DNA of 64,000 nucleotides, taken from Paragordius varius. Taxonomy: Eukaryota; Animalia; Nematomorpha. Position numbers and translations under genes: made by a program. Location: assembly GCA_964247055.1 (NCBI GenBank), contig OZ176052.1:3348001-3412000 (forward strand), read 5' to 3'. Shown here one piece after another: positions 2,505 to 64,000 of this stretch (the first letter of the stretch is position 1; each line of letters starts with the position of its first letter). Under the pieces are notes generated by a model. It saw only the letters and a program-made list of their open reading frames with translations. It made no database searches and was not told the DNA's origin.

Positions 2505-5500
2505 ATGTGTGCAATTTATTTTATATATTTGATTGGTATTTTTTTATTATAATATAGTTTTACCTTATATTTACTGTACACTTACCTATATTAATCATTA
2601 TGAAACTTTGAATTATGCAACAAACCGCAAAAAAAGAGATCTTACTAGTGAAAATCCTCATATATCATTTAATGCATTTAACAAGTTAGTTGTTGTTTTA
2701 CTATATTAGATCATTTGATATAATATTATCCTACAATAATTATGAAATGTCACCAAACCTCATAATTACTAGTGAATATAGTCACAAAAATGAGACTCAA
2801 TATATTTCTGATAACATTTTTGTCAGTGGATATGTATTAGGTAAACGTTTTTCTTATGTATAGGGTACTTAAATTCTCACGCCGAAGGAAATTTATTAGA
2901 TGGCGTTTTTGCAGGAGTTATTAAATTATCTATTCCTAACCAAATTGATCTCGAGTTATATTATGTGGAAAGGGTTGGACCGTTTTATCCAAATAAACAC
3001 CATTCTATCATATATAAATCTGAAGATATAAATGATTTACATCTCCTATCTTCATTACCTTCAAATTATAAAAATTTTAAATTTTATAAAACTAAATCAT
3101 CATCAACAACCAAAAACACAAAGATAACAAAAAATAATACTCATTTTTCAATAGATTCTTCCTTGAAGCACAATTCACATAATCACAGGTAAAAAAATTA
3201 AATTCGCAACATTTATTAAAGTTATTTAATATAAATAATTTCCTTATTTCCAACTTAGTTTTCAACTGTTTACTAAATCATTATCATGAATTTAGATGTT
3301 TGTAATGAAAAAATACCATTAATCTTTATTATTTTTTTTGATTTTTTAAGCTGTGGGTGGATTATTCAAGAAATATACGTTTAATCTCAAAGTTTGCAAT
3401 TTAGTTTTTTTTATTTTTTTTGAAGAGAACCCCTAAAAACCAATTTATATTATAATTGGTATGGGAAAATATTTATTCATTTGTTTTTTTGTATATTTTT
3501 GACAAGTTTAAAATTAGGCTATCACATATAACTTATATTTTGTATTTTTTTTTATAATCATTTAAAGATAATCCCGAATTTAATATATTTTTGTCTTATG
3601 ACTATGTACCCATTGTTTAATTTTTTGACATAATCTATAGTTTGTAGATAGCGTGCTGTTTTCATTATATTAGTTAGATACATAATATTTTAGTTTTCAT
3701 CTACCTTAAAAATATTTATTTTTTTTAATATAAGAACGCTTATTAAATTTATTTAGTGTTATGTAATATTGGGGTCAAAACTCGGCTCACTATTTTATTT
3801 TTCATATGTGGTTAACAATTTTTTTTCTTTTCATTTTTTTGAAGACGATTACATTTTGGGGTGGTTTGTACCCTAGAAAACCTGGTCAATAAACTACTCC
3901 TTTGAAAGTGTTCCTCTTAAATATAAGACATTGTTTTCTTGTATTACATAAAAAGTCTTTTTTCATTACAGTTTTTGAGTTTTAGCAAATTTAACAATTC
4001 CGAAACAATTCAAAAACAGCTGATTTATATCATAAATATCAATTCTTGTTAAATGTAATTTGATTGGAATTATTTACATTTTTCAACCATGGTTGCTTGC
4101 CTGTTGTATCAGCTATTTAAAAAAATTAAAAAATGGCGACGAAAGAGTTTTGAAAAGATTTTTTTGCAATTTTACATTTTTGAAAAGTTTTTTTGACAGA
4201 TGCGCCTAAAAGGCTAAAGAAAGCATATTTTTTTGGCTTTATATATTATACTTTTTCAGATATTTGAGTTATTTAAAACTACTTAAAATATTTTTAGCGA
4301 CCATTGATAGAAGTATTGATTAGTAAAAAAAAAGTTTATTGACATATTCCTAATATGCTGTTTTATATTATTTTTCAGGTTTATATTCAGTTTGAAAAAC
4401 GTACCAGGCCCACAACTTGTAATCTCATAAATTTTTGCGAATATTATTTTTACTCGAGATTTACACATAATAATTAATTTTAATTTAAATTTCACAAGGT
4501 ATAATAGTGCAATATGCTTTTAAGTGGTTTTAGATTATTTATACCTTTTTTTGTGAAATAAAACATATAAATGACCTCAATTACTCACTTAATATTACTA
4601 GTTTTTTAGTCTATTTGTTTTGTTCTAAATTTATACTCAATAAAAATAGGTAATGAACTATATTAAATATTTTATTATTTTTTTATGTTTTCAAGTTCAG
4701 CCAATATTGTGGTGTGATTGTAATAATATGGGTTTTTTTGTAAAAAGTTTAATTGGACCCTTGAGGGTTTTTATACATATAGAGTTGTAATAAATTTTTT
4801 TTTAAATATTAAAATCCATACATTTTTTTATCGATAGCGATTTAACATACTTTACTAAGTTTTAGCTTTTATATATATATGGGATATTATAAATTTACTA
4901 TAATAACTCGTTCATTATTTAAATAAATTTCTTGCTCTTTTGTGTTTCTTAAAATTTTGATTAATTGGTGGACAAATACATTAATATATAATTTCATAAG
5001 TTGTCCGTTATTTTTGGACACAAATTTGAGTTAATTTTTCAAAATATTATTGTAAATTATAAATTAAATTAGGGATAGTTTATACGATGTGAGTAAAGCT
5101 CAGGAAGCACCACATGAATACTCTTGGTGCGGACTCAGTAATGAACGCATTCGAGATTGGATGATGTCCCATTATGCTCAAATACCTTCTTCTCCTCAAT
5201 CAGACACAAATATCAAACAAAAACAACTACAAGTAAATCATTGAAACGTTTATATAAATAAGTATTACTCAAATGGTTTCCTGAGCCGTATTTTTACAAA
5301 ATCTAGCGGGCTCGCACATCAAAGACTACTTAAACTATATATTTATAATAATATTGACAATAAAAGCAACAGCTTTTACAATTAAATTCATAATAAAAAT
5401 GTTTTTTACAATAGTTCGTTAATAATTTGCATTGAATTGATTACCGTCTGCGTGCATATATAGACAAAAGCACATGATGCGTTTAAATATTTTCCTCCCG

Positions 5501-34000: not shown

Positions 34001-37000
34001 GGAAACAAGAAGCTAGTTTTTGGCGCACTAAACTTATAGGTGCTTGTCGTTTAATTCAGAATAATAAATTGGAGCCTGTGTCAAATAAAGAAATGCAGAC
34101 TTATTCCTGGCGTGTTCTCTCAAAACCGGTAATGACTCATGACTACACCTGGTTAATATAAAATAAAGACTCTTACGGATAATTTTTTATCGGCTTCCCA
34201 ACTTTTAATGTAGCTTACATAAAATTTAATCAGTTCATCCATTCCTTTTCCAATTTTATGGAACTTTAATTATAAAAAAATAAAACCTATATTTCCATGA
34301 AGGATTTAATAAACATGTGGCATAATACATATAGAAAGAATACGAAGAAATAAATGTAAAGGTAAGAACATTTGCTGTCGAATTGCTTTCTGAATGTCTG
34401 AACAGTCAAGAAGCCAAAATAATTCTTAATGAAAAGTACGGCTGCGAAAAAGTTGGAGAGAAAGCACAAGAACACTTTACACGCGTCAAAATTGCTCATG
34501 GTTTGGATCAAAAAGAGGTTTATTAAATAACTATGATTTCATTTTATTTATATATATACTTGAATATCTTAATTATCTCAAATATCATATGGAATTAGTT
34601 GTTTTAAGTGTGTGGATTCCAGATAGCAATTATCAAAATAAACTGATATAATTATAAGTATGATTCGGAGCTCTTGTTTGTCGAGTCCCTTGATAATATA
34701 AAGCGCTTATCGGTCTGCCACTAGCTGATTAAAAATAGGGATCACATTTTAAAATTGATCAAAATTTTATAATATAAAATTAATACAAAAATATTACAAT
34801 ATACATAAAACATTAAATAAAAATATCCATTATTTATAATATAGTTTATTGCGCATTCGATAACCCAAAGATTGCTGCATGTGAAATGGCTGGGAGAATG
34901 GTCAACCAATAAATCTCTTTCGATCACTGCCTACATATTTTTCTGGGTCGTAAAAATCATACTTCTACCATTCATCATATTATCATACTGCCTGCTACCA
35001 AATTTTAGGTAAGTAGTCTCTAACAAATATTGTAATTCAATCTATTTGATATTATATTTAAAGTGGAAGATGGGTTTTGTAATATATTTAAAGAAAATAC
35101 AGTTAAAAAGAGACCATTTTTTATAAAGATTTTCAAAGCAATTGAAGAGCCCAGTTAATAAATTTGTCAGTTATGTGGTATCATACATCATATTTCTCTC
35201 AATGCTGTTTCTACACAGTGAATTCAACGAGAATACACATCGTCATGGTCCACCTAATACAGGTATATAGTTTTCTAAAATAATGGTAATTATTTACCTA
35301 TTACCATGTAATATTTTCTTTTGTATCATATTTACCACATACTCAAAAATTTGCTTGCAAAGTTATTAAACGGTATATATTTTAACGATGATATTATCCC
35401 TGTTAGGACCCCTAATATGGCACAGGACTAAGTTTACTTTACATGTCTGATCGAATGTAGTTTTTTATTTTTAAGTGTTTAATTGTGAATAAAAAATACA
35501 ATGTTCAATTAAAGACGTAACTAATTCAGAGAAAAATCACTTACATGGTGACAGACATGTGAATAAAACTCCTCTGTTCCAATTAAAATACCGAAATGGT
35601 CAATAATCGCCTTCGTTAGAATTCCTGTAATGTAAAGATGAGATCCAAAAAAATACATTTAGGTCTATATGAATGTGCCGTTGTCCCGAGTTAATCCGAT
35701 CATATGAGTAAATGTGCATAAGCCGACTCAAGTAACTCCCATATTTTCCTCCAGTTTTTATTTTGTAATGTGTTGAAATATCTGCAAATAGTTGCTTAAA
35801 ATTTTCTAACCATTTTTACTATTTGCGCCATTAAGTTATTTAGTTTGAGCCGATATAATTTCCCAAAAGGCATATCTCAATGCTAATTCACATGACCCTT
35901 GATTAGCGTTAACAAGGAGGCCGATTTTTTAAAGTTTTTAATAAAAAATGTATATTTATTTCAGGTCTAGAACTGTTTATAATATTTTGGGTGTTTGGAC
36001 TCACGTGGCTGCTAATCAAAACGTTTCTTTTTCAGGGATCCCACAAATTTTTTAGTTTATGGTGGAACTGGTATGTAATGGACAATTCTTTTAATTAACT
36101 TCATAGCTAATTTTTATGTTCAATATATTTATCTAATTATATTTAAAAATATGTTTGTAAGGTATGACATACTTAACCTGATTATGTTTTATTCAACCTT
36201 TATTTTTTGGATACTTTCCTATCGAGAGCTGATTAATAAACATTCCAAAATTGAACGAAAATTTTGGGCCAGTTGGGATCCTACCTTGATTGCTGAAGGG
36301 AATTTTGCCGTCGCTAAGGTGTTAGCTTTCGGAAAACTATTAAATATGTTTCAAATCAACAAATCCCTGGGACCATTGCAGGTATTATTTATGAAATAGG
36401 ATTTCATAGCTAATACTAGGTTTGGGTCTAACCAGTTGTTTTGTGCATTTTTTGCTGAGACTATGATCGCTTATAAAAATAACCAGTCAAAAACTTTAAA
36501 ATGTTTCCTAGGTGATTAATATTAAATTGTGCTATAAAAAAATTAGACCCTATCAAAGCAATCGGGAAACTTTTGGCCATTCCCAGTTTTAATTAATTGT
36601 TATTAGTATAAATGAATTAAACAAAATAATATGAAAGGTTACCATATTAAATTTCAAATATTTTTCATTTGCGGTAAAGATGACCAGGTTTATAAGCGGT
36701 AATACCGGCTATTTTTTAATCTATCCAAACCAGACCATAGCCATTATTTATATATTTTTACATTATATTTATAACTTTCAAATGATAACAAAATTTCATT
36801 AACGTATATATCAATTTTAAAAAAATGGCAATTATAGGTGTCGTTGGGAAGAATGGCCAATGATATGATTATATTTCTTGTCGTGTATTTCTTGGTTTTA
36901 CTATCTTTTGCCACAGGATTAAACCATTTCTATTACTATTATGATGGTATGATCAAATTAGAAACGAATGGATTAAAGAAATATCAAATGTCATCTTTCA

Positions 37001-39262
37001 CAACGTAGTGATATTGGCAATAATTTAATTACTTCTACCTACTAAATATAAATTATTATAATTTATGTGGTTTTTACATTTTAGTGTATTAAAACCAAGA
37101 TATATACAGTGTGCATTTTAATGGTTGCTTATTTCAACTATAGGGCAATTCGCAACACAGTAGTATATAGCAAAACTATAAAATGTTGAATTAACAACAA
37201 AATGTTGAATTAACAATTATTTACTTTCTTTTTTCCATACACTTCTGTGTTGAAAATTACCATCCAATAGTTTGAAATAAGCAACCATTAAAATGCATAT
37301 TGTATGTGTTAAGATGATCCGTTTCATCAAAAAATTTAATAAATAATTTACGGATATAAGAAGCAATCTTAAAGCCGCATGTTACGCTTGGGCAGCGGGT
37401 TAAGTACCACTAAGCTGTGGAAAAAACATTACCCTACTTAATAATAATTTTATTTGATATTACCTTCATTCATCTCAGTTAGTATTATGATTACTTCCTT
37501 CTTACCCTTAAAAATATATTGTTACATTTTTAGACTTTCTCACACATATAAAACCCTTTTTTGGGCACTCTTTGGGATGTCACCTATAGAATCGGCTGAT
37601 GTGGTTATTGGGAACTTTGATGAAACGAATGCCAAGCTTATTGCTGGAGTAACTGAGGCCCATAGTTATACGCAAACCGTTGGTTATCTTCTTTTTGCCC
37701 TTTTCCATCTCATTGCCATCATAATATTCCTAAACATTATGATAGCTATGATGTCTAACTCGTTTCAAAAGGTGCAGGTAATGAGAAAGTCGTTTAAAAG
37801 AACATTATTTGAAAATTATATGATGCATATATAATATGGTTTAATGACATATATTGGTCGTTTTGCAAACAGAATCAAAAGCTAAAAAAATTATTTTCCA
37901 TCCAATGTTTACCTTGTTTTATAAGTTTTCATTTATTAAAATTATGTAATATTGGTTTTTCTGAAAATAATGTACCCCATTTTGGGTTATATATCAATGT
38001 TTTTTGCGGCTAATTTTATCAATTTAGGTAATATATGATAAAAAAATGATACCTATATCGTAACCATTTTAATGAAACTAAATTATTGCGGAACCGAAAT
38101 TATCCAGAGATCTAAAAAATATAATCGATAGGATTATCTTAAAAAATCAATCCTAATTTATTACTGATTTTCCTTTAAATTCCAATTTTAACATTTTATA
38201 TTAATAAATAGGATAATGCAGACGTTGAGTGGAAATTTGCAAGGACTGCAGTTTGGATGAGTTATTTTGAGGATGGTCGAACACTACCACCACCCATAAA
38301 TATGTTACCGTCTATGAAATCTATTATGAAATTACTTACGGTATTCTCTTATGACCCTCTAATCCAGGGGTCACAAATAGCTATGCGGGCCGTATTTTTA
38401 ACTTTTTTCTAGTTGTTCGTTGTCAATTGGATAGACCTATTCAAAAAATTTGTTCAATACATATCAATTTAACTACAATTGCTGGGCATTTTTTTTTTCA
38501 AAATATGGATTTCCAAATATCTAATGTCTTGGATGGCGGCGTGTTAAACAATCCTGCTTAACTAATTAAAAAATATGAAATATTACCTTTTAAATCTCGT
38601 ACTATTTATAGGGGCAAATGTTTCGGAAGAAAAAGGATAAGGGTTCGGGAGGAGCTTTTATAAACGATGATTACCAAGTTTTAATAAATATATTTTCTAG
38701 AAATTAATTACGGTAATTATTGGAAGGTATTCCAGGCGTAAAAACAAGTATTTAATTATATTATAAAGAATTTTCAATCACTTATCAACTAAATCTTTCT
38801 TATGATAAATTTTTTTATGATAATATAAAATTGTTTCCGATATTTTCAAAAAAAATTTAGATGCATATATTATTAAAATATTAGTTATATGAAACAAGCA
38901 ATTCACATATAAATTTATTCGGTAAAACCGATATTTTTGATATAAAAATATTTTAATTGGCGCTAAAAAAATTATTGTTGGGTAATTACTTATAATATAT
39001 CGTTTATTTGCTTATTTTCTAAAAAATAAATTATTGACATACCTTATTAAATCGTTAATGCTTAAAATATCGACATCAGTTATTATATATATAATATATA
39101 TATATATATAATGACTCTAATTTTTATATGCCATATAGAGATATATTGGGACCAACATTTCAATCAAATGCAAATTCTGACGCAACTTATTCCATTTTAG
39201 CCCCAGAAAAAGTATTTACTAGCGATGAATCAAGCACAGAAATATTGATTTTGTCAACCTAA
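28100..39262 (+). CDS. TRPC: TRPC-family (canonical transient receptor potential) cation channel, 15 coding exons, about 785 aa
   Basis: Exons: 28100-28306, 29231-29451, 29496-29656, 30140-30324, 34335-34517, 34845-35008, 35129-35262, 35965-36070, 36162-36381, 36838-37004, 37534-37777, 38212-38340, 38612-38677, 38701-38747, 39139-39262. Features: ankyrin repeats; Zn motif KPHVDL|CKCQKC; [13 protein letters not shown]; FAVELLSEC; [11 protein letters not shown]; six TM segments; S4-S5 LGPLQ|VSLGRM; pore LFWALFG; [17 protein letters not shown]; TRP box EWKFAR; [11 protein letters not shown]; rib helix YQ|[10 protein letters not shown]. Confidence 0.95.
30895..33401 (-). mobile_element. Internally deleted hAT element with a TTF-type zinc-finger transposase remnant
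   Basis: TIRs CAGTGGCGGAACTAC / GTAGTTTCGCCACTG; 8-bp TSD CCTCAAAT / CTTCAAAT (7/8). The minus-strand remnant at about 31680-31260 ([27 protein letters not shown]) resembles the hAT N-terminal ZnF_TTF. Confidence 0.85.
31896..32368. mobile_element. hAT-type MITE nested in the hAT element
   Basis: Ends CAGCGGTCGACAACC and ATTGCCGACCTCT, with internal GCGGCCC/GCGGACCG motifs typical of hAT (Charlie-like) MITEs. Confidence 0.6.
37107..37302. mobile_element. Tc1/mariner-type MITE in a TRPC intron
   Basis: About 35-bp TIRs CAGTGTGCATTTTAATGGTTGCTTATTTCAA / TTGAAATAAGCAACCATTAAAATGCATATTG, flanked by TA on both sides. Confidence 0.85.
38678..38700 (+). other. 23-nt GT-AG micro-intron (TRPC intron 13)
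   Basis: GTTTTAATAAATATATTTTCTAG. The unspliced frame reads GTT TTA ATA AAT ATA TTT TCT AGA AAT TAA (stop). Removal gives DDYQ|[10 protein letters not shown], matching the TRPC YQKVMKRLIKRY helix. Confidence 0.85.
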
Positions 39263-39642: not shown

Positions 39643-40276
39643 TATACCATTTGCACTTCAAGAGTGTCCTTGAACACTTCAAGTTGGTCCTTGAATTCAA
39701 GTTGGTCCCTGAACATTTCAAGTTGGTCCTTGAACATTTCAAGTTGGTCCTTGACCACTTCAAGTTGGTCCTTAAAATTTAATAATTTTGATTTAACCAT
39801 AATTTTTGCATTAATTTTTTATTTGATTATTTATTAACCTAATTTTCTTATTATCATATATTTATTCATTTAAAAATAAAAAAATTTATTGAAAAACCAC
39901 TTTTTATTTCAAAATATTTTTTTTCATATGAACAAAAGTATAAAGTTTTAAATGTTTTTAATGAAAAATTTTAATTAATAAAGCAGAAAACTTATATATT
40001 TTTTCATTTCGTGTTAAAAACTTATAAATATCCAAAATTATTTTAAAAAATAAACAAAGATATACGGTTTCTCAAAGATTAAAAGTTGATATCGATTTAA
40101 AATTTATGTTAAATAATAGAAAATAGGTTAAAAACAATAAAATAGTGAAAATATTTTCGATTTGATTGATAAAAGTTAAAAACAAAACAAAAAAATCAAA
40201 GGACCAACTGTGTTCAAGGACCAACTTGAAATGTTCAAAGACCAACTTGAATTGTTCAAGGACCAATTTGAAGTGT
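39643..40276. mobile_element. Foldback-like element with inverted arrays of a ~21-bp repeat
   Basis: Left arm: TATACCATTTGCACTTCAAG followed by about 6 copies of TTCAAGTTGGTCCTTGAACA(C/T). Right arm: about 4 inverted copies GGACCAACTTGAAATGTTCAA. An AT-rich spacer separates them. A decayed copy of the left arm lies at about 570-700. Confidence 0.7.
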
Positions 40277-40600: not shown

Positions 40601-41568
40601 TTAGTGCTCCATAAGTAACGGTTTCCCTTGCATAACGGTATTGAATAGAATTTTATGAGAAAAATTGAAAAACTCTTTAATCAAGGACATGTCCATAGTT
40701 TGAATTAATTCCAAAACTTGGGATAAATATTCCGTACCATCTTTTGGCATCTTATCAAATTCTTTAATCAACTTTCGTAGAAACAAATGTGCCGGATTTA
40801 ATTGCTGGCTATGGGGCGGCATCAATATTATTTTGCCAGAAAATGTGTCAAATGCCTGAGATTGGAAGTTTATAGTAATATTGGTAGGATCTATCATAAA
40901 AAAGAATTCAGCGAAATTTGGGTGATTCAAGTTTTTTAACAAAAAGCATTCATAGTTTTGAGCATCGTAAGGTTTAAGTCTAATATCATAACGAAGGATA
41001 CCATTTATTCCAATTATACAGAGCAAAAATATGCGATCCTTATCATACTTGAGGGTGAGAGGTTCATTTTCGCGAACCCAAACGCGTTTAAATATCCCAT
41101 TTGGATAAATTTCGACTTGGTTAAGGAAGACTAATTTTTCCATAGGTATATCCTTAATAAGCATAGAATAATGGTATCGTTGATCAATTATTTCGGTTGT
41201 ATTAACATTGGTTTCGACAAAAAACGGTAGCCTTTTGCTCACATAACCCATACTTTTAAGGTTTTGTAATATAGTTTTCCTACAACACTTGAGTGGCTCG
41301 GGTATAAACTGTTTCATTTGTTCGACCGGCATGGTATTATCCATAGCAAGTATTTTTTCCAAACAAGGTTGTAATTTAAGGTTAGGCCTTCGGCCTGACG
41401 GATGACGAACAAATTCTCGGCCATTGGCCAGATTTCGGCGAAATCTAATGAGACTTGTGGGAGACACACCGATTAATTTGGATAATTCTGCAGCAGATTT
41501 TTTGTTGTTTTCTGGTTCAGAAAAAATTTGATAGGCTAATCGAACCTTTTCTTCGGTCCATGGACGAT
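40601..41568 (-). CDS. IS630/Tc1-mariner-derived protein (HTH plus DDE_3-like fold, catalytic residues lost); probable domesticated transposase
   Basis: The open frame extends beyond the listed ORF to a TAG acceptor at 41569-41571, adding (D)RPWTEEKVRLAYQIFSEPENNKKSAAELSKLIGVSPTSLIRFRR (HTH). It then reads KTILQNLKSMGYVSKR, LVFLNQ (normally VFxDE), FFMID, and PPHSQQLNPAH (normally PPYSPxLNPIE). There are no stops or frameshifts over 968 nt. A possible 4-nt first coding exon ATGG lies at 41829-41826, followed by GTAAAA. Confidence 0.8.
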
Positions 41569-42669
41569 CTAAATATATATATATATATATTTATGAATAA
41601 AAAATCATTGAAATTTCATATGCATTCTTTCTGCTTTTTAACATTCTTAAATAAAAATAGACCAAAGCACTGTTTTGGTAGAGAAAATTTTCACCTTAAC
41701 AATATTATTAAAAAAAGGGAATTAATATGACAAACTTAATGCGTTTAAATCAGCTTGCAACAATTTAGAAATACTGATAAACATTTTTACAAAAGGTAAA
41801 TATTGTTCTAACATTTTGTTTTTACCCATACACTACTTGCCAATTGGCCAACAATAATGTGTATGGGCTAGCATAAATGTGGACACTGTAAATATCTAAA
41901 ATTATATTATAAAGTTTTGCATAAGAGATTTTTTAATTTGTTGTATACAGTGCGAGCTATTTGGGCCATTTCGGTATTTTAAATGGTTATATGTATATGA
42001 GATTTTTCGTATTATTCATAACATAGTGAAAATTATGGAAAAAAATAGTGTTCAATATGTAACTAATATAAAATGAAAAATCTCAATAGCAATAGACATG
42101 AAAATAACCCTTTGAGCCATTTAAAGTAATTGGCTAACAATAGTTCTCGTTACTGCATTTAGATAAAATAATTGTAAGATTTTATTGCGGGTACCACTGA
42201 ATTTTCATGATTTAATTAATGTAACTTATAAATCGAAAAATCTCAACATGACAACATTCATGTTATAAACCTTTTCAAGTCATTTAAAAGGTACTTAAAT
42301 GACCAATAGCAGATCTCTCTTACTGTGTTATGTGTGTCTTATATGCGTCTTTTAAAATGTTAATAGAGAAATGAATGTAAGGCATGTAGGTAAAAGCATA
42401 AAATTTATTGTTTTTTTTGCTTTAAATGTAAATAATATGAGAAAAAAAAGAAAAATAAATTTACTTGCACACATTTTTTACATTTGTTGCTGTAATAGCA
42501 AATTAAAATGCCTATATTACCAATAATATGACAAAAATTCATTGCCACTATTTATGGACCAATTAAAACACTTTGCAAGCCAATAATAATTGCTTTCTTG
42601 TAAACGAAAAATTTATACCTATTTATAATATCACACTAACGATCTCTGTGCAACATTTTTTTTAAATAT

Positions 42670-43374
42670 CACTTAGATACAACATGTTCAGTTCTTTGAT
42701 TAAAATTAGGGTCGTTGGAGACCCCAAACCTGTTTAAAATTAAATACTTGAAAAATATGGACGGAATCCATGGCAAAAGTTTGCACTTAATAACATTAAT
42801 AAACCAAAATATAAAAAATGAATCAAAAAACTTGATATTTCTTATTTTTAGTAAAACCCAAAGGTAAAAATTAAGTCAGCATGACGTGCAAAGCTAAATT
42901 AAAAATAATAAACCACCTTTTCTGTTTCTATCAATGTAAGATGTAATTTTGCAGTATGATTAAGTATATACTGCTAGAAAGTTATTAATTATTGCAAAAT
43001 AGCATATCAAAGAATTTTAATGGCTAATAATAAAAGTGAAAAAAATAACTATAAGTCAATAATATTGCCCTTTTGTACATATGCTATTTGGCAATAATAA
43101 CTTTCTAGTAATGTATACTTACTCATACTGTAATATAAAATTTGCTATAATATTAGCTTTAAAAAATGAACATGATATTTTGCAAAAATGTTGTAATATA
43201 AAATGGCGTCGAAGTAGTTTGAAATTATGCACCATATTTAGATATTTCGGCTTTTATATAATTTTTTTAAGATTGAAGCATAAATTTAAATCACAATCGT
43301 TTCTTTCAGAAGATTTTCATAAGTATCAACTTAAATGTAGTCTGCGGTCTTAGTACCCCAATTTGAATCAAAAG
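42670..43374. mobile_element. piggyBac-like MITE copy carrying a nested 179-bp MITE (42952-43130)
   Basis: Homologous to 1087-1641. The nested element has ~55-bp TIRs CAGTATGATTAAGTATA.. / ..TATACTTACTCATACTG followed by TA. Confidence 0.7.
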
Positions 43375-44695
43375 TTAAACAAGAATATGGTTACGTTAAA
43401 CAGTACGCACATTATGCAAGCCCAATCACATTATATAGGATGAATATTATAGTAGTATAAGGGTAAAGACAAAAAATTTTGAAATTAATTATTTTTTCCC
43501 ATCTTACATATTTTTTTCATAATTATGGACGAAATTTGTAAAACACATTACTGTATTACAAATTGGACAATAAACTTAGGCCAACAATAAGCCTGTATTT
43601 AAGCTAAAAATTTTGTTTAAGAGTCAGTACGCAAAAGTGCTCTAAAAAATGTTAAAAATGAAAAATTGGTTTTGATCAAATATTTACGATTATTTAGAAA
43701 ACATATCACCCAAAATTGAGCTTTATGATTAATAAAACAAAAATTATAAAAGAAACCCGCGAAGATATGTGTTGGACCTGGTTTAGTCAGAAATTATTTA
43801 ATAATAACAGATATTTTAATATTTCGTTTGGATATTGCCAGAAGCGTCAGGGCTAATATTTATAAAAGTGTCAATTTTTATTATATAATACATCCTACCT
43901 ACTGAGTAATGTTTAAATATTTAAAAACTTGGTTAATAACATTTTTCTCTTTTTTTGGTTGTCAAAGACTGAGATCCATTAAGGCTTGTTTCTGAATTTT
44001 GAGTCATATCCCCATTACTGACATATGAGGACTGCGCAATTTCATCCATAGTTATACTTTCAAGAACCTCCTTTTGACAACTGCTAAATTCATTCTCAGT
44101 ATCAGTTTTAGATGGCTCTAAAATGAAAATACATATATGAATGATTTAGATAATTATCTGTATGAAATTTAAACAATATATAAACAAACCTTGCATCACA
44201 CTAAGAATGTAATTAGATGAGTAAAATACAATGGATACCAATATATATCAATTACTAGTAAATGCAAAGATTTTCACGGATGATCTTGTAACACGCATAT
44301 ATACTGTTGTTTTATTTTATTTATTTGAAGCTATTCGCTTCATTATCTTTTAAAATTTACTCCCAAACCAATTAAATTTTAAAAATTTTTATTTCAGGTA
44401 TTTGAAAACTGTAAAGTGTATGATAACTTAACACTTCAATTCAAATTGGGATATCTAGTGTCAGACTATTAACACTTCGATTCAAATTGGGGTGTCAAAA
44501 TACTTCAGACTAAATTTAGTCAGGATTTTTAAAAAACTACTGTAGGGAACGATCCCAATATATATGCTTCTTTCCTAATAAAAATATTAAATATGCCAAA
44601 ATATCTAAATAAAATTTTGTTTTGAAAAAAAAGCTCCATGTCCAAATACTTCGACGCCATTTTTTTACAAAATTAGTTTTAACACTTTGATTTAA

Positions 44696-48137: not shown

Positions 48138-51100
48138 TAAAGTGACCAGACGTCCCGCTTTTGGCGGGACAGTCCCGCTTTTTCACACTTTGTCCCGCGT
48201 CCCCCTGCGTTTTTGAAATGTCCCGCTTTTTCACGATTATATAAAAAAAAAATTTAAATACATTTAATTTTTTTATAAAAAATTTTAGATAAAAAAATTT
48301 GCTTTTTACCTCGAATCATCGTTCATTCCTAATAGTTTATGAAAGAATGGCTTCAAAACTAAATAATAGTTCAATGATAGCGCATTTTTAGGGTGTAAAG
48401 GGCCTATTTAACGGCTAATCCAAAAATCCGCTCGACTAAAATTTTTGAATTTTTACGGGTAATACTTTAAGCAGCTATTGAACTCATATGGCCTGATAGG
48501 CTTTCTGAAAAGCCCCAAAAGCACGCGATTGCGATATGACGGGTCAGTTTTTCGCGGGTAGCTCCTTACTCAGCAGCTATCATCAAAGTAATGCTTAACT
48601 AAAATATTTGCCTTTTAGCAGGGAATACGTGGAATCTTTATTGAATTTTTACGGTTTCATACCTTGGTCGAAAAATAGATTCAAAAAATATTTTTGTGGA
48701 CTTTGTTTTCTGAAAAAAATGGCATTTTACGAAGGGAGCGGTTAAAAAGAGGGACTAAATCAAAAAAGCGAGACGACTATGTTCGGCGCAATCGAAAATA
48801 AGTAAATTAAATAATCCAATACTTTCTCCAGAAAATTGTCTCAAAGACACGATTTTTGTGGATTTCTGTTTTCAAAAAAACCCGTTTTTTACACGGGGTA
48901 GGCCCGAATTGGGGACCTAATTCCAAAAAGCAAAAGTCGGGACATTTATTGATGATTATATTATTTGGATATTTGGATTTGATTGGGTTCACCGGTTTTC
49001 CGGAAACAGATCACAAAGTTACATGATGAATCAGTTTTTAGCGGGTAGCTCCTTACCCAGCAGCTATCATCAAAGAAACGCTTGACTAAAATTTTTGCCT
49101 TTTAACAGGGAATACGTGGAATCCATATTGAATTTTTACAGTCTCATACCAAGGGCGAAAAAAAGATTTAAAAAATTATTTTTGTGGACGATTTTGAAAA
49201 AAATGGCATTTTACGGAGGGAGCGGGTAAAAAGAGGGCCTAAATCAAAAAAGCGAGACGACTATGTTCAGCGCAATCGAAAATAAGTAAACAAAAATCAT
49301 ATTTGAAATTGAATGGTCCAACACGTTCTCCAGAAAATTGTCTCAAAGACACGATTTTTGTGAACTTCTGTTTTCAAAAAAAAAACCGTTTTTCACACGG
49401 GGTGGGCCCGAAGCTATAAATATTAAAAATATGGCCCACGATTTTACTGGAAGTGTCGGACTCAGCTTGGGAAAATTCAAGTGGTGAGTATTTTTGGGCC
49501 TTTTTCAAAAAAACTGCGAAGCTATTGTCGGGGCATTCATTAATGATTATATTTTTTCGAAGTTTGGATTTGAATGGGTCTACCGGTTTTCCGGTACCAG
49601 ATCACAAAGCCAGCATTTTCCATTTTTATATATATATGGATTAGTTTAAAATATGAGTACAAAATAAGGTTGTAAATTTAACGATGATTTAATGAAAGAA
49701 TTTCCTTTATCAAAAAAACGAAGAATGAATCATTTGTTAAATGCTTTATGTTAGGGGTTCACCCTACCACATGGCGGTAAGCATGATATTACAAAGCATA
49801 TGGAATCACAGAAACATAAAAAATGTTTAGATATGGTGGCATCATCTTACAAAATGAGCGATTTTATCGTAAAACCGCTTTTGGAGAGGAAGAAAAGAAT
49901 TTGGCACTCGCCCAAGGCGTTTTATCTTTTAACGCGTTAATCACAATCATTCCTTTAGATCTATGGATTGTACCTCACATGTTATTCGTGCCCGTACAAA
50001 GGCTGAAGCCATTGTATGCATTGTCCTTTCGCCACATGCATTTTCTGAATACAAAAAGATTTGCTGAAAATTAATTTCATATCGCCATACTCTGATGTAT
50101 CAAATCAGGAAACAAAAATATTTCCCACGTTAATAAAATATTTTGGTCCAGAAACCGGAGTAAAATTAAAATTTTATTTCTCTACCCGGTGCGAATTCCG
50201 ACATAATTTTACTTCAATAAATGAATATTCTAGGAAAAATAATTTAAAAGACAAAATCATCGCATATTGCGCTGACAACATCAATACGAACTTGGATGGA
50301 AAAGCAAGTAGGAGAACAAAAAATAAGTTTCAGTAATTAGCAGATAATCTTAATCCATTATTGACGTTGGGTGTGTAGCGCATATAACACACAACGCTAT
50401 TCAAACACCTGCTGATTTGTTACCCCTAGATGTGGAAAATGTAGGTGTTAAGGTATATTCCTATTTTTATATACACGGTACGCGTTGAAACGCTTGTGCA
50501 AATGCAGAAGTTCAATATTAAAAAATGCTTGGATATTGTAAAACTCGTTGGTTAGCTTTTATGCCAGCTATCGAAAGAGTTTTAAAAATGTATGATCCTT
50601 TAAAATCTTTTTTATCACAGGACAAATGTCCTACAACTTTGGAAAAGTTTTTTGAAAGTGATTCTTCAATATGGTTAGAGTTCCTACATAATCAAGCTTC
50701 TCTCTTTCAAAATGTTATTAAATTGATAGAAAGTGACAAAACTTCGGCAATCGAAGTAGCCAATGAAGTTAGTAACCTAAAATTCCAATGTTAAGATTAT
50801 AAAATAATTTTATACCAGTAACCATCCGCAATATTATAAATAATTTAGAAAAACAAGGCTTAATAAATCGCCAAGATATCCTGTACCATTAAAAATGTTT
50901 TATACAAACTGTAAAAATTATTGTACACTGGACGGTGCAACTTAATGAAATTGATCATTTTCATTGGATAACATTAAAACCAGAATTTAATTGGTGCGAT
51001 GTTCAAAAATCATTTCTGCATCTCCCAAAAATTCCCAAAAAGTAACCTTTCAGAAAATATCTTTTTTTTTAAAAATATCATTAGTTATAAAATATATTAA

Positions 51101-51591
51101 TAGAAAAACTTAAATTATGGACAACAGAAAAAAATACAGTAGAAAAGAAATGGTTAGAAATATTTCATCATTTTGAAACAAACTATGTTCCATACAATAT
51201 TTTAAAAATTGTAGAATTTGCATTATCTTTGCATGGAACCAACGCTGCCACTGAGCGCGTTTTTTCCACAGTAAATCAGATGTGGACATCGGAAAAATCA
51301 AATTTAAATGTTGAAACTTTACCATTTTATCTGTCAAATATAATTTGACAAATTCTTGTGAAGACTTCTACAATATTTTATAAAATGATGCCAATCTGCT
51401 AAAACGCATTTACTCAAATAAAAAATATACCAAGGAATTAAATATTTTTTTTATTTATAATGTATTTGTGTTAAAAATAAATAAATACTGCAATAAATTT
51501 TTTGTATAAAAATTTTTGGTTGTACACCCCCCCTCATAACCCCCCCCCTTTCTCAGATTTGTCCCGCTTTTTCCTTCAAAAAATCTGGTTA
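48138..51591 (+). mobile_element. Decayed hAT transposon with a transposase pseudogene (about 49653-51430)
   Basis: Perfect 8-bp TSD GGTATACC (48130-37 and 51592-99). The left end is TAAAGTGACCAGACGTCCCG with repeated GTCCCGC subterminal motifs; the right end is degenerate (ATCTGGTTA). Remnants with many stops and frameshifts: CKFNDDL, HGGKHDITKHMESQKHK, RTKAEAIV, GYCKTRWL, WLEFLHNQ, and the C-terminal dimerisation motif LSLHGTNAATERVFS. Confidence 0.9.
48377..49640 (-). mobile_element. Helitron-like insertion with an internal ~430-bp duplication, nested in the hAT
   Basis: The minus-strand 5' end A|TCCATATATATATAAAAATGGAAAATGCTGGCTTTGTGATC is nearly identical to the Helitron at 45350. Unit 48544-~48900 repeats at 49030-~49410. 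The 3' end is degenerate, so the left boundary is approximate. Confidence 0.65.
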
Positions 51592-56799: not shown

Positions 56800-59700
56800 T
56801 AATGGAAAGAAGAAAATTAGAAAAGAAAAATTTGAAATTTTAAGAAAGGGTAAAGTGGACATAAGGGTGAAACTTTAGAAAAGGATGAGGGGTAAATTCA
56901 GATTTAAACGGATGAAGGGGAAATGAAGAAGGGTGAATCATTGTTAGAAACGGAAGAACTGGTAATGAAGAAGGGTGATAATGAACGGATCAAGTGGATA
57001 GAAGTAGGGTGAACCATTAGAAGAAACGGATGAAATGGATACGAAGAAGGGTGAAACGTTAGAAGAAACGGATGAAGTGGATATGTAGAAGGGCGAAACT
57101 TTAGAAGAAACGGATGAAGTGGATATGAAAAAGGGTGAAACGTTAGAAAAGGATGAACTGGATATGAAGAAGGGTTAAACTTTAGAAGAAAAGGAAGAAA
57201 TGGATATGAAGAAGGGTGAAACTTTAGAAGAATCGGAGGAAGTGATACGAATAAGGGTGAAAGCTTTGAAGAATCGGAGGAAAGGGATAATAAGAAGGGT
57301 TAAACTTTAGAAGAAACGGAGGAAGTGGATATGAAGTAGGGAGAAACTTTAGAATAAAAGGATGAACTGAATATAAAGAAGGGTGAATCTTTAAAAGAAA
57401 CGGATGAAGTGGATATGAAGAAGGGTTAAACTTTAGAAGAAACGGAGAAAGTGGATATGAAAAAGGGTGAAACTTTAGAAAAGGAGGAAGTGGATATGAA
57501 AAAGGGTGAAACTTTAGAAAAGGAGGAAGTGGATATGAAGAAGGGTTAAACTTTAGAAGAAAAGAAAGAAGTGGATATGAAGAGGGTTTACTTTAGAAGA
57601 AACGGATGAAGTGGATATGTAGAAGGGTGAAACTTTAGAAGAAACGGATGAAGTGGATATGAAAAAGGGTGAAACTTTAGAAAAGGAGGAAGTGGATATG
57701 AAGAAGGGTTAAACTTTAGAAGAAAAGGAAGAAGTGGATATGAAGAGGGTTTACTTTAGAAGAAACGGATGAAGTGGATATGAAGGGTGAAACTTTAGAA
57801 GAAACGGATGAAGTGGATATGAAAAAGGGTGAAACGTTAGAAAAGGATGAAGTGGATATGAAGAAGGGTTAAACTTTAGAAGAAAAGGAAGAAGTGGATA
57901 TGAAGAGGGACTTTAGAAGAAACGGATGAAGTGGATATGTAGAAGGGTGAAACTTTAGAAGAAACGGATGAAGTGGATATGAAAAAGGGTGAAACTTTAG
58001 AAAAGGATGAAGTGGATATGAAGAAGGGTTAAACTTTAGAAGAAAAGGAAGAAGTGGATATGAAGAGGGTTTACTTTAGAAGAAACGGATGAAGTGGATA
58101 TGTAGAAGGGTGAAACTTTAGAAGAAACGGATGAAGTGGATATGAAAAAGCGTGAAACTTTAGAAAATGATGAAGTGGATATGAAGAAGGATTAAACTTT
58201 AGAAGAAATGGATGAATTGGATATGAAGAAGGGTTAAACTTTAGAAGAAAAGGATGAAGTGGATATGAAGCAGGGTTAAACTTTAGAAGAAAAGGAAGAA
58301 GTGGATATGAAGAAGGGTGAAACTTTAGAAAAAAACGATGAAATGGATATAAAGAAGGGTGAAACTTTAGAAGAAACGGATAAAGTGGATATGAAAAAGG
58401 GTGAAACTTTAGAAAAGGAGGAGGTGGATATGAAAAAGGGTGAAACTTTAGAAAAGGAGGAAGTGGATATGAAGAAGGGTTAAACTTTAGAAGAAAAGGA
58501 AGAAGTGGATATGAAGAGGGTTTACTTTAGAAGAAACGGATGAAGTGGATATGTAGAAGGGTGAAACTTTAGAAGAAACGGATGAAGTGGATATGAAAAA
58601 GGGTGAAACTTTAGAAAAGGAGGAAGTGGATATGAAGAAGGGTGAAACTTTAGAAGAAACGGATGAAATGGATATGAAAAAGGGTGAAACTTTAGAAGAA
58701 ACGGATGAAGTGGATATGAACAAGGGTGAAACTTTAGAAAAAGATGAAGTGGACATGAAGAAGGGTTAAACTTTAGAAGAAAAGGAAGAAGTGGATATGA
58801 AAAAGGGTGAAACTTTAGAAGAAATGGTGAAGTGGATATGAAGAAGGGTGAAAATTTTGAAGAAACGGATGAAATGGATATGAAGAAGGGTGAAATCTTA
58901 TAAGAAACGGATGAAATGGAGATGAAGAAGGGTGAAACTTTAGAAAAAAACGATGAAATGGATATGAAGCAGGGTTAAACTTTAGAAGAAAAGGAAGAAG
59001 TGGATACGAATAAGGGTGAAAGCTTTGAAGAATCGGAGGAAAGGGATATTAAGAAGGGTGAAACATTAGAAGAAACGGATGAAGTGGATATGAAAAAGAG
59101 TGAAACTTTAGAAAAGGATGAAGTGGATATGAAAAAGGGTGAAACTTTAGAAAAAACGGATGAAGTGGATATGAAGAAGGGTTAAACTTTAGAAGAAAAG
59201 GAAGAAGTGGATATGAAGAGTGTTTACTTTAGAAGAAACGGATGAAGTGGATATGTAGAAGGGTGAAACTTTAGAAGAAACGGATGAAGTGGATATGAAA
59301 AAGGGTGAAACTTTAGAAGAAAAGGATGAAGTGGATATGAAGCAGGGTTAAACTTTAGAAGAAAAGGATGAAGTGGATATGAAGAAGGGTGAAAATTTCG
59401 AAGAAACGGATGAAATGGATGTGAAGAAGGGTGAAATCTTATAAGAAACGGATGAAATGGAGATGAAGAAGGGTGAAACTTTAGAAAAAAACGATGAAAT
59501 GGATATGAAGAAGGGTGAAACTTTAGAGGAAACGGAGGAAGTGGATATGAAAAAGGGTTAAACTTTAGAAGAAACGGATGAAGTGGATATGAAGAAGGGT
59601 GAAACATTAGAAGAAACGGATGAAGTGGATATGAAAAAGAGTGAAACTTTAGAAAAGGATGAAGTGGAAAATGAAGAAGGGTTAAACTTTAGAAGAAAAG

Positions 59701-62700
59701 GAAGAAGTGGATATGAAGAAGGGTTTACTTTAGAAGAAACGGATGAAGTGGATATGAAAAAGGGTGAAACTTTAAGAGAAACGGATGAAGTGGATATGAA
59801 GAAGGGTTAAACATTAGAAGAAAAGGAAGAAGTGGATATGAAGAGGGTTTACTTTAGAAGAAACGGATGAAGTGGATATGAAGAAGGGTTTACTTAAGAA
59901 GAAACGGATGAAGTGGATATGAACAAGGGTGAAACTTTAGAAAAAGATGAAGTGAATATGAAGAAGGGTTGAACTTTAGAAGAAAAGGAAGAAGTGGATA
60001 TGAAAAAGGGTGAAACTTTAGAAGAAACGGATGAAGTGATGAAGAAGGGTTAAACTTTAGAAGAAAAGGAAGAAGTGGATATGAAGAGGGTTTACTTTAG
60101 AAGAAACGGATGAAGTGGATATGAAGAAGGGTTTACTTAAGAAGAAACGGATGAAGTGGATATGAACAAGGGTGAAACTTTAGAAAAAGATGAAGTGAAT
60201 ATGAAGAAGGGTTGAACTTTAGAAGAAAAGGAAGAAGTGGATATGAAAAAGGGTGAAACTTTAGAAGAAACGGATGAAGTGGATATGAAGAAGGGTGAAA
60301 CTTTAGAAGAAACGGATGAAGTGGATATGAAGAAGGGTGAAACTTTAGAAGAAACGGATGAAGTGGATATGAACAAGGGTGAAACTTTAGAAAAAGATGA
60401 AGTGAATATGAAGAAGGGTTGAACTTTAGAAGAAAAGGTAGAAGTGGAAATGAAAAAGGGTGAAACTTTAGAAGAAACGGATGAAGTGGATATGAAGAAG
60501 GGTTAAACTTTAGAAGAAAAGGAAGAAGTGGATATGAAGAGGGTTTACTTTAGAAGAAACGGATGAAGTGGATATGAAAAAGGGTGAAACTTTAGAAGAA
60601 ACGGATGAAGTGGATATAAAAAAGGGTGAAACTTTAGAAAAGGAAGAAGTGGATATGAAGAAGGGTTAAACTTTAGAAGAAAAGGAAGAAGTGGATATGA
60701 AAAAGGGTGAAACTTTAGAAGAAACGGATGAAGTGGATATGAAGAAAGGTTAAACTTTAGAAGAAACGGATGAAGTGGATATGAAAAAGGGTGAAACGTT
60801 AGAAAAGGATGAAGTGGATATGAAGAAGGGTTAAACTTTAGAAGAAAAGGAAGAAGTGGATATGAAGAGGGACTTTAGAAGAAACGGATGAAGTGGATAT
60901 GTAGAAGGGTGAAACTTTAGAAGAAACGGATGAAGTGGATATGAAAAAGGGTGAAACTTTAGAAAAGGATGAAGTGGATATGAAGAAGGGTTAAACTTTA
61001 GAAGAAAAGGAAGAAGTGGATATGAAGAGGGTTTACTTTAGAAGAAACGGATGAAGTGGATATGTAGAAGGGTGAAACTTTAGAAGAAACGGATGAAGTG
61101 GATATGAAAAAGCGTGAAACTTTAGAAAAGGATGAAGTGGATATGAAGAAGGATTAAACTTTAGAAGAAATGGATGAATTGGATATGAAGAAGGGTTAAA
61201 CTTTAGAAGAAAAGGATGAAGTGGATATGAAGCAGGGTTAAACTTTAGAAGAAAAGGAAGAAGTGGATATGAAGAAGGTGAAAATTTTGAAGAAACGGAT
61301 GAAATGGATATGAAGAAGGGTGAAACCTTATAAGAAACGGATGAAATGGAGATGAAGAAGGGTGAAACTTTAGAAAAAAACGATGAAATGGATATAAAGA
61401 AGGGTGAAACTTTAGAAGAAACGGATGAAGTGGATATGAAGAAGGGTGAAACTTTAGAAGAAACGGATGAAGTGGATATGAAGAAGGGTGAAACTTTAGA
61501 AGAAACGGATGAAATGGATATGAAAAAGGGTGAAACTTTAGAAGAAACGGATGAAGTGGATATGAACAAGGGTGAAACTTTAGAAAAAGATGAAGTGGAC
61601 ATGAAGAAGGGTTAAACTTTAGAAGAAAAGGAAGAAATGGATATGAAGAAGGGTGAAACTTTAGAAGAATCGGAGGAAGTGATACGAATAAGGGTGAAAG
61701 CTTTGAAGAATCGGAGGAAAGGGATAATAAGAAGGGTTAAACTTTAGAAGAAACGGAGGAAGTGGATATGAAGTAGGGAGAAACTTTAGAAGAAAAGGAT
61801 GAACTGAATATAAAGAAGGGTGAATCTTTAAAAGAAACGGATGAAGTGGATATGAAGAAGGGTTAAACTTTAGAAGAAACGGATAAAGTGGATATGAAAA
61901 AGGGTGAAACTTTAGAAAAGGAGGAAGTGGATATGAAAAAGGGTGAAACTTTAGAAAAGGAGGAAGTGGATATGAAGAAGGGTTAAACTTTAGAAGAAAA
62001 GGAAGAAGTGGATATGAAGAGGGTTTACTTTAGAAGAAACGGATGAAGTGGATACGTAGAAGGGTGAAACTTTAGAAGAAACGGATGAAGTGGATATGAA
62101 AAAGGGTGAAACTTTAGAAAAGGAGGAAGTGGATATGAAGAAGGGTTAAACTTTAGAAGAAAAGGAAGAAGTGGATATGAAGAGGGTTTACTTTAGAAGA
62201 AACGGATGAAGTGGATATGAAGGGTGAAACTTTAGAAGAAACGGATGAAGTGGATATGAAAAAGGGTGAAACGTTAGAAAAGGATGAAGTGGATATGAAG
62301 AAGGGTTAAACTTTAGAAGAAAAGGAAGAAGTGGATATGAAGAAGGGTTAAACTTTAGAAGAAACGGATGAAGTGGATATGTAGAAGGGTGAAACTTTAG
62401 AAGAAACGGATGAAGTGGATATGTAGAAGGGTGAAACTTTAGAAGAAACGGATGAAGTGGATATGAAAAAGGGTGAAACTTTAGAAAAGGATGAAGTGGA
62501 TATGAAGAAGGGTTAAACTTTAGAAGAAAAGGAAGAAGTGGATATGAAGAGGGTTTACTTTAGAAGAAACGGATGAAGTGGATATGTAGAAGGGTGAAAC
62601 TTTAGAAGAAACGGATGAAGTGGATATGAAGAAGGATTAAACTTTAGAAGAAATGGATGAATTGGATATGAAGAAGGGTTAAACTTTAGAAGAAAAGGAT

Positions 62701-64000
62701 GAAGTGGATATGAAGCAGGGTTAAACTTTAGAAGAAAAGGAAGAAGTGGATATGAAGAAGGTGAAAATTTTGAAGAAACGGATGAAATGGATATGAAGAA
62801 GGGTGAAACCTTATAAGAAACGGATGAAATGGAGATGAAGAAGGGTGAAACTTTAGAAAAAAACGATGAAATGGATATAAAGAAGGGTGAAACTTTAGAA
62901 GAAACGGATGAAGTGGATATGAAGAAGGGTGAAACTTTAGAAGAAACGGATGAAATGGATATGAAAAAGGGTGAAACTTTAGAAGAAACGGATGAAGTGG
63001 ATATGAACAAGGGTGAAACTTTAGAAAAAGATGAAGTGGACATGAAGAAGGGTTATACTTTAGAAGAAAAGGAAGAAGTGGATATGAAAAAGGGTGAAAC
63101 TTTAGAAGAAATGGTGAAGTGGATATGAAGAAGGGTGAAAATTTTGAAGAAACGGATGAAATGGATATGAAGAAGGGTGAAATCTTATAAGAAACGGATG
63201 AAATGGAGATGAAGAAGGGTGAAACTTTAGAAAAAAACGATGAAATGGATATGAAGAAGGGTGAAACTTTAGAAGAATCGGAGGAAGTGGATACGAATAA
63301 GGGTGAAAGCTTTGAAGAATCGGAGGAAAGGGATATTAAGAAGGGTGAAACATTAGAAGAAACGGATGAAGTGGATATGAAAAAGAGTGAAACTTTAGAA
63401 AAGGATGAAGTGGATATGAAAAAGGGTGAAACTTTAGAAAAAACGGATGAAGTGGATATGAAGAAGGGTTAAACTTTAGAAGAAAAGGAAGAAGTGGATA
63501 TGAAGAGTGTTTACTTTAGAAGAAACGGATGAAGTGGATATGTAGAAGGGTGAAACTTTAGAAGAAACGGATGAAGTGGATATGAAAAAGGGTGAAACTT
63601 TAGAAGAAAAGGATGAAGTGGATATGAAGCAGGGTTAAACTTTAGAAGAAAAGGATGAAGTGGATATGAAGAAGGGTGAAAATTTTGAAGAAACGGATGA
63701 AATGGATGTGAAGAAGGGTGAAATCTTATAAGAAACGGATGAAATGGAGATGAAGAAGGGTGAAACTTTAGAAAAAAACGATGAAATGGATATGAAGAAG
63801 GGTGAAACTTTAGAGGAAACGGAGGAAGTGGATATGAAAAAGGGTTAAACTTTAGAAGAAACGGAGGAAGTGGATATGAAGAAGGGTGAAACATTAGAAG
63901 AAACGGATGAAGTGGATATGAAAAAGAGTGAAACTTTAGAAAAGGATGAAGTGGAAAATGAAGAAGGGTTAAACTTTAGAAGAAAAGGAAGAAGTGGATA
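56800..64000. repeat. Purine-rich satellite with a 39-42 bp monomer and ~4.3-4.4 kb higher-order repeat; truncated by the window end
   Basis: Consensus GAAACTTTAGAAGAAACGGATGAAGTGGATATGAAGAAGGGT (42 bp, 32/42 purine) with 39- and 40-bp variants. The left edge decays gradually. The rare variant AGCTTTGAAGAATCGGAGGAAAGGGA occurs at 57262, 59021, 61699 and 63308. Confidence 0.97.

Follow-up and report, generated by a model that had tools for sequence, protein, structure and literature searches.

SETMAR (Metnase) is a primate gene that arose from the Hsmar1 mariner transposase. It holds a full-length transposase module with helix-turn-helix (HTH) and RNase H-like domains, it is immobile, its catalytic triad is altered, and it is under purifying selection; in all of these points it is like the gene described here (hereafter the window gene), which lies in a stretch of 64,000 nucleotides (the window) of the horsehair worm Paragordius varius. 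However, SETMAR is of mariner (DD34D) origin, is fused to a SET domain and has only the third residue of the triad changed, whereas the window gene is of DD34E-type origin, has no detected fusion to a host domain, has lost two carboxylates and is one of three paralogues. The transposase domain of Metnase acts as a DNA-binding module (PMC13548663). Another group of known systems consists of the pogo-derived CENP-B, Jerky and TIGD genes and Abp1/Cbh of fission yeast, which, like the window gene, keep the whole architecture with a degenerate catalytic domain and form small families of DNA-binding paralogues. Unlike the window gene, they belong to the pogo branch with its DDxD motif and CENP-B-type HTH, have orthologs across large clades and are of known function. 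That domestication of this kind has recurred is described in PMC7386202.

In Drosophila, the genes CG14478, CG4570, cag, toy and LOC26532114 come, like the window gene, from a Tc1/mariner source; they, too, have lost their TIRs and TSDs and are under purifying selection (PMC13548663). The same study distinguished two routes of domestication, by which a gene either keeps the DNA-binding module only or keeps a catalytic domain with intact DDE fold and motif (PMC13548663). Unlike these genes, the window gene keeps both modules and has a broken triad. Domestication was recognised in that study by conserved microsynteny and expression as well as by TIR/TSD loss together with immobility, and by purifying selection; the latter two features are found in the window gene as well, the last of them being measured from paralogues. 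Domesticated transposases whose catalytic domain has degenerated are already well known from SETMAR, CENP-B, TIGD and the Drosophila genes, and among jumping genes that became host genes the window gene is a fairly ordinary example, though a well-supported one. Domestication of Tc1/IS630-type transposases outside the pogo and mariner branches has rarely been documented, and such events have been called "relatively rare" (PMC13548663). In addition, the locus would give the horsehair worms, a phylum that has been little studied, a host-gene innovation.

The open frame of the window gene probably represents the main exon of a host gene, one that came from a Tc1/IS630-type (DDE_3, DD34E-like) transposase, lost the transposon ends and the catalytic Glu, was duplicated, and has been kept by selection. 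The original prediction had read the locus as an exapted transposase, and this interpretation is upheld by its single copy, the lack of TIRs, the replacement of two catalytic carboxylates, the full predicted fold and the strong purifying selection. Moreover, the window gene is not a lone gene: it is part of a set of three old paralogues.

The window gene is read from the minus strand, where a stop-to-stop frame of 329 codons is open at 40604-41590. It is the longest such frame of the window (the runner-up has 246 codons), and it lies in a region of 27-31% G+C, in which stop codons are frequent. The homologous part comprises 321 codons at 41566-40604, of which the first conserved residue is Trp3. 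The stop-free, transposase-derived frame that had been claimed earlier was borne out, and the motifs named for it (HTH, VFLNQ, MID and NPAH) are all present, with 33 residues from D226 to H260. The HTH stretch that had been pointed out corresponds to residues 24-44, which lie inside the first HTH subdomain. The coordinates of all features are collected in Table 1.

Table 1. Features of the window gene, its candidate first exons and its two sister frames (window positions unless a contig is named).
Feature	Position	Strand	Remarks
Main coding exon	40601..41568	-	2 nt completing a split codon, 321 homologous codons and TAA stop at 40603-40601
Splice acceptor TAG, phase 1	41569..41571	-	8 nt before first Trp codon; no upstream in-frame ATG; family pattern
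Candidate first exon (a), ATG+G, then GTAAAA	41826..41829	-	257-nt intron; read directly; candidate
Candidate first exon (b), same ATG, 18 codons + 1 nt	41775..41829	-	donor TCA/GTATTT; candidate
Candidate first coding exon (c), 36 codons + 1 nt, ending KKREK	43941..44049	-	T/GTTATT, phase 1; intron of 2372 nt; candidate
First HTH subdomain, residues 5-47	41426..41554	-	helices 5-16, 18-22, 25-32 and 36-47 in model
GRRP linker, residues 58-61	41384..41395	-	between the two HTH subdomains; alignment
Second HTH subdomain, residues 65-112	41231..41374	-	helices 65-75, 81-87 and 96-105 in model
RNase H-like (former catalytic) domain, residues 140-321	40604..41149	-	strand/helix order in model and structural matches
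N149, codon AAC, first catalytic Asp position	41120..41122	-	D in 119/125 relatives
D226, codon GAT, second catalytic Asp, kept	40889..40891	-	D in 118/125 relatives and in all 3 paralogues
H260, codon CAT, catalytic Glu position	40787..40789	-	E in 113/125 relatives
Sister frame L003	C3:2232257-2233219		47% identical to window gene
Sister frame L004	C3:9587540-9588487		38% identical to window gene

All protein searches were performed with the main exon. In a Pfam scan, DDE_3 was absent from the window protein at E <= 1, and the only hit was a weak HTH_29 (E = 0.16); a word-indexed search of 5.8 billion proteins with the window protein as query returned nothing. The two sister frames score 15.3 bits (L003) and 16.8 bits (L004) against DDE_3 (PF13358), below its gathering cut-off of 28.6 bits. 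A six-frame search of the worm's own 110.6-Mb assembly gave 81 matches to the window protein, among them intact frames that are 25-29% identical to it (E 7e-30 to 7e-24) and in which DDE_3 is recognised at about 1e-21. A profile built from the three paralogues retrieved 324 proteins at E <= 1e-3 from 1.84 billion representatives and matched DDE_3 proteins at 3e-20, and the best 10 of the 324 carry DDE_3 according to a Pfam scan. The best profile score was 89 bits, and no ortholog of the window gene was found among these representatives. As for the type of transposase, the spacing of 34 residues from the second Asp to the Glu (DD34E), found in 101 of 118 aligned relatives, is that of the Tc1/IS630-like type.

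The AlphaFold2 model, computed from an alignment of 125 sequences, reached a pLDDT of 93.8 and a pTM of 0.80, and its layout consists of two HTH subdomains of three to four helices each, a linker and an RNase H-like domain. In a Foldseek search against the PDB, the best match was the Mos1 transposase, aligned over the full length (E 7e-11, probability 1.0), followed by matches to the catalytic domain of Sleeping Beauty and the transposase domain of Metnase/SETMAR. The structure prediction that had been proposed as a check thus returned a full transposase fold. The DDE_3 scaffold that had been read from the letters stands because of the intermediate sequences and the predicted fold, and not through a direct Pfam match; the HTH, in turn, is seen as a bipartite one in the model, with the Pfam profile contributing only the weak hit given above. 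Taken with the intermediates, the model firmly places the window gene among the descendants of the Tc1/mariner-IS630 (DDE_3) transposases. Between the two HTH subdomains, the aligned linker reads GRRP in the window gene and L003, and GRK(S/P)K in the mobile copies. It sits at the position of the GRPR-like motif of Tc1-type transposases, which is a minor-groove motif.

At the three catalytic columns of the same alignment the window gene reads N149-D226-H260. The claim that two of three catalytic carboxylates are gone is confirmed, since N149 and H260 stand at columns conserved in 113 to 119 of the 125 relatives. The triad is K-D-H in L003 and D-D-H in L004; NPAH is found in all three paralogues, and His occupies the Glu column in no other aligned sequence. 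Several near-invariant neighbours are altered in the window protein as well (E150Q, G152E, N227P, H231T, Y252H, P254Q and I259A), so that the signatures DE, DNAxxH and YSP have become NQ, DPTNIT and HSQ, respectively. With two residues of the triad and these neighbours replaced, the canonical two-metal site is gone, and the window protein would presumably be unable to cut DNA. D226, A259 and H260 are invariant among the three paralogues, and the block SxQLNPAHxFLxK is their best-conserved one. In Argonautes, whose PIWI domain is RNase H-like, a D-D-H triad supports catalysis. Since D226 and H260 are invariant and L004 keeps this very triad, the three-paralogue family may, with a small probability, have residual chemistry or an altered one.

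The window gene is a single-copy gene, with one DNA-level match in its own assembly. No inverted repeats were found around it within 38.5-44 kb of the window, whereas the same tool recovered the TIRs of a mobile relative used as control (L005), which are 216 nt long and 98% complementary; the copies of the L005 family, about 2.2 kb long and 98.4-99.3% identical, lie on three contigs. Probing the interval 36-47 kb with the L005 TIR gave nothing beyond a 30-nt AT-rich match, and no TIRs were found around L003 or L004 either. That is to say, a complete triad, flanking TIRs and multiple similar copies, which mark an active autonomous Tc1/mariner element, are all missing at the window gene. The absence of TIRs had been asserted in the original prediction and is supported by the control, and the proposed search for near-identical, TIR-flanked copies elsewhere in the assembly found none.

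The search of the worm's own genome revealed two intact sister frames, L003 and L004, on the same contig (C3) as the window gene. Each of them is unique, and apart from the paralogues themselves nothing in the genome exceeds 32% identity to them. The three paralogues have the NPAH motif and the 33-residue spacing in common. In a tree of the three paralogues, 48 external relatives and two resident mobile families, they form one clade (SH-aLRT 100), which adjoins the resident mobile families and a protein of Gordionus (SH-aLRT 96). The contig C3 measures 14.42 Mb, i.e., 13% of the genome, so the probability of finding all three paralogues on it is about 0.017; their co-location is consistent with copies that arose by duplication along a single chromosome or by local hopping that preceded immobilisation.

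Between the paralogues, pS is 0.76-0.79, that is, saturated, and pN is 0.34-0.43. A codon model on the three-taxon tree gave a maximum-likelihood omega of 0.08, which is imprecise owing to the synonymous saturation and measures selection on paralogues, not orthologs; fixing omega at 1 costs 215 units of 2dlnL, which rejects neutrality, and fixing it at 0.5 costs 100. The HTH part (residues 1-110) and the former catalytic part yielded 0.10 and 0.07, respectively, that is, the DNA-binding and the disabled catalytic domain are constrained equally, and strong purifying selection acts on the whole protein. Since the His is common to all three paralogues, the Glu was, most parsimoniously, lost before they diverged; the constraint would therefore have acted on a protein without the canonical triad, which is the core argument for domestication. 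The purifying selection expected of a domesticated gene is thus found among paralogues that share the Glu loss. With three old paralogues sharing a catalytic loss, selection can be measured without a second species, which makes this an unusually clean case within one genome.

The nearest relatives in the tree, i.e., the resident mobile elements L005-L007 and L008/L009, resemble the window gene in architecture, in the phase-1 intron before the first Trp codon and in the type of N-terminal leader. They differ from it in having an intact D-D-E triad and a DDE_3 match at 1e-21, and they are only 25-29% identical to it; the L005-L007 family, moreover, has 216-nt TIRs and multiple near-identical copies. 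These mobile relatives of the same intron and leader architecture provide a natural contrast, which has a bearing on the changes that turn a transposase into a host protein.

On the preferred reading, the history may be outlined as follows. An ancestral transposase would have lost its transposon ends and its catalytic Glu, which became His, and two duplications along the present contig C3 would then have followed. On the branch of the window gene and its closest sister, the first catalytic Asp would also have been lost and nearby signature residues changed. Both domains of the whole protein would since have been held by strong purifying selection. The protein, whose translation needs an exon further upstream to be joined to the acceptor at 41569, is predicted to bind specific DNA, its putative target, by means of the bipartite paired-like HTH and the GRRP linker, while the former catalytic domain may serve as a scaffold, e.g., for dimerisation or for contacts with DNA or protein. 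Cleavage of DNA by the canonical two-metal mechanism would not be expected of it.

The simplest competing explanation is that the window gene is a relic, that is, the sole intact survivor of a transposon subfamily that has died out, open by luck and of no use to the host. Tc1-type copies of every age abound in the genome (the 81 matches), no ortholog exists among the 1.84 billion representatives, and the start codon is only a candidate, all of which would suit a relic. However, three Glu-less paralogues stand at synonymous saturation with omega of about 0.08 and without any stop or frameshift in some 960 codons, whereas a neutral frame closes after a few percent of divergence: in simulations with substitutions only, 5% divergence left the frame open in 4% of the runs, and 10% divergence in 0.35%. 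Decayed copies are also missing, there being none above 32% identity for either sister or above 30% for the window gene, and the relic explanation is very unlikely. It is highly improbable, too, that the gene works at the level of transposons, as a repressor-type defective transposase kept for moderating a related mobile family. Young related mobile families are indeed present (the L005 copies with their TIRs are 98.4-99.3% identical), and the predicted fold retains a DNA-binding domain; but an identity of 25-29% to the resident mobile transposases makes shared DNA targets or heterodimers unlikely, the window gene is not carried within an element, and the synonymous saturation of the paralogues points to an age far exceeding that of the mobile families (dS 0.015-0.07). 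A role as repressor of related elements, which had also been suggested for the locus, is pure speculation.

The small chance of residual chemistry leads to a third explanation, according to which the family is still enzymatic through a re-tooled site (Asp-His, or D-D-H in L004) and acts as a host nuclease or recombinase, with the window copy as a catalytic or non-catalytic partner. The invariance of D226, A259 and H260, the strong conservation of SxQLNPAHxFLxK, the D-D-H kept by L004 and the omega of 0.07 of the former catalytic domain, the more constrained half, all speak for it, as does the domesticated PiggyMac excisase of Paramecium, which has dead paralogues as partners. Against it, the first Asp, without which no RNase H-like transposase is known to work, is missing from the window gene and L003, and the active-site neighbours have changed (E150Q, G152E, N227P, H231T), which leaves this explanation unlikely. 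A broader version, in which the paralogues would be a lineage-specific family whose re-tooled site does nucleic-acid chemistry, either as a heteromeric nuclease or recombinase whose partner subunits are non-catalytic, as in the ciliate excisases, or as a genome-defence factor against the abundant Tc1-type elements, is equally doubtful.

The start of the host gene has to be sought upstream of the main exon. No in-frame ATG occurs between the upstream stop and Trp3 of the window gene, and since residues 1-110 are constrained, that part must be translated, which calls for an exon further upstream. Throughout the family, the young mobile copies included, an in-frame ATG is likewise absent, and a phase-1 AG stands 8 or 11 nt ahead of the Trp codon. 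The phase-1 intron at this place has therefore been inherited from the transposon family, and the acceptor at 41569 is credible. The splice coordinates proposed for a minimal first exon are correct as read (ATG at 41829-41827, G at 41826, GT at 41825-41824 and AG at 41570-41569, with a 257-nt phase-1 intron). Of that first-exon model, however, it is the acceptor that stands, and the 4-nt exon is only one of three candidates.

In the two relatives L004 and L005, a leader exon is followed by a 23-nt GT-AG micro-intron and then by the main exon, and these leaders are rich in N, S, T, D and E, with a basic cluster at their end before the phase-1 GT. An analogous leader of L003 has 90 codons, lies 1.67 kb upstream and ends in KPKTPRR before A/GTATAC. 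Candidate exon (c) of the window gene is of a similar kind: it is 109 nt long, has the same bias towards N, S, T, D and E, occurs once in the genome and lies about 2.4 kb upstream. The parallel between (c) and the leaders of L003, L004 and L005 is suggestive, though without statistical support, and exon (c) is at least as plausible as the 4-nt exon (a). BLASTP between the leaders gave no alignment, and translated searches for a leader exon conserved between the paralogues returned only noise. Because leader-like ATG frames with a phase-1 donor arise by chance at a background rate of 0.26 per kb per strand, exon (c) is best treated as a candidate. Two further possibilities were considered and rejected. 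A micro-intron of 22-27 nt at the window gene's acceptor, as in L004 and L005, is absent, there being no GT within about 65 nt upstream and a (TA)n run in its place. A 296-nt block (about 300 bp, 42660-42955) common to the upstream regions of the window gene and L003, at 77% identity, is a high-copy repeat with 2354 candidates in the genome rather than a conserved exon or promoter.

Within the same transposon clade, the protein of Gordionus is the sole one from a named animal. This protein (CAK9300787, triad D-D-A) was considered as an ortholog and rejected, as it is closer to the mobile L005 (120 bits) than to the window gene (60 bits).

As regards the surroundings, exons of a TRP-like cation channel were read on the plus strand at about 34.3-38.4 kb of the window; the pore exon matches Ion_trans in Pfam, and 38212-38409 (+) contains an EWKFAR box. 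The channel gene and the window gene converge or overlap. A Pfam scan of the neighbouring hAT-like fragments gave no match. The host genome is that of an animal and is very AT-rich; its HSP70 gene is interrupted by an intron, and its COX1 carries TGA codons. The mitochondrial contig contains long perfect palindromes inside open frames, and coding palindromes in mitochondrial genomes are described for Nematomorpha in PMC6649704.

For L004, an intact sister paralogue of the transposase-derived gene, a clean two-exon model was obtained: a leader of 37 codons, with KRKRKHN at its end, is separated from the main exon by a GT-AG micro-intron of only 23 nt, which directly abuts the main exon. This layout of leader, micro-intron and main exon is common to L004 and the mobile L005 copies. 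In the second resident mobile family, L008 and L009 lie about 1.9 kb apart and together make up a palindromic Tc1/IS630 element. The annotated Gordionus sp. protein P0007 (NCBI CAK9300787.1, 364 residues) belongs to the same transposon clade, its triad being D-D-A and its N-terminal extension 40 residues long, and it could be either a decayed copy or an independent domestication.

The positions of the features are collected in the table. The putative long first introns of the main gene and of the sister paralogue L003 each contain a repeat of about 300 bp, which is present in thousands of copies genome-wide (2354 candidates, 76–81% identity) and whose distance to the coding exon differs between the two genes. 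Just downstream of the stop codon of the main gene are the two arrays of a ~20-bp repeat, with 63-nt arms that are 92% complementary and about 450 nt between them. The TRP-like channel gene is convergent with the transposase-derived gene (− strand); its pore exon (window 37448–37831) matches Pfam Ion_trans, and its TRP box was read within 38212–38409.

Positions of the features (G000, the window's own assembly; C3, C11 and C44, its contigs)
Feature	Position	Strand	Remarks
TRP-like cation channel gene, exons	window 34335-38409	+	Pfam Ion_trans, EWKFAR TRP box
Two short arrays, imperfect ~20-bp repeat	window 39654-39776 and 40210-40276		opposite orientation
High-copy repeat, ~300 bp	window 42660-42955; L003:928-1216		
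hAT-transposase-like open pieces	window 49755-51345	+	several, differing frames; by eye
42-bp purine-rich satellite	window 56906-64000		runs on beyond window end; at least 172 units, 86% matches
Further 42-bp satellite positions	G000:C3 2.753-2.758, 5.017-5.028, 5.924-5.928 Mb; L022:5350-6700		
L004 leader and micro-intron	L004:1364-1500 = G000:C3:9587403-9587539		
L008/L009	G000:C11:1383385-1387184		two transposase genes, 100% identical, inverted
Palindromes, mitochondrial contig G000:C44	L017:53-314 and 4064-4257		

The likeness of the open pieces to hAT transposases, judged by eye, lies in features such as a C-terminal ERVFS-type motif, and a Pfam scan of them gave no match; their state could be due to decay or to splitting by micro-introns. 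Over its final 7 kb the window shows an extreme GC and AT skew, which the 42-bp satellite accounts for; across the satellite array a single reading frame stays open, giving a 14-residue acidic/basic repeat. The genome search found several arrays, with every scored match on C3, and another array lies 3.6–4.9 kb upstream of L003.

On the mitochondrial contig, the two palindromes are perfect or near-perfect, with arms of 131 nt and 97 nt and a spacer of 0, and both fall within open reading frames under the invertebrate mitochondrial code. Upstream of COX1 on this contig, a palindromic unit is tandemly arrayed with a period of 72 nt.
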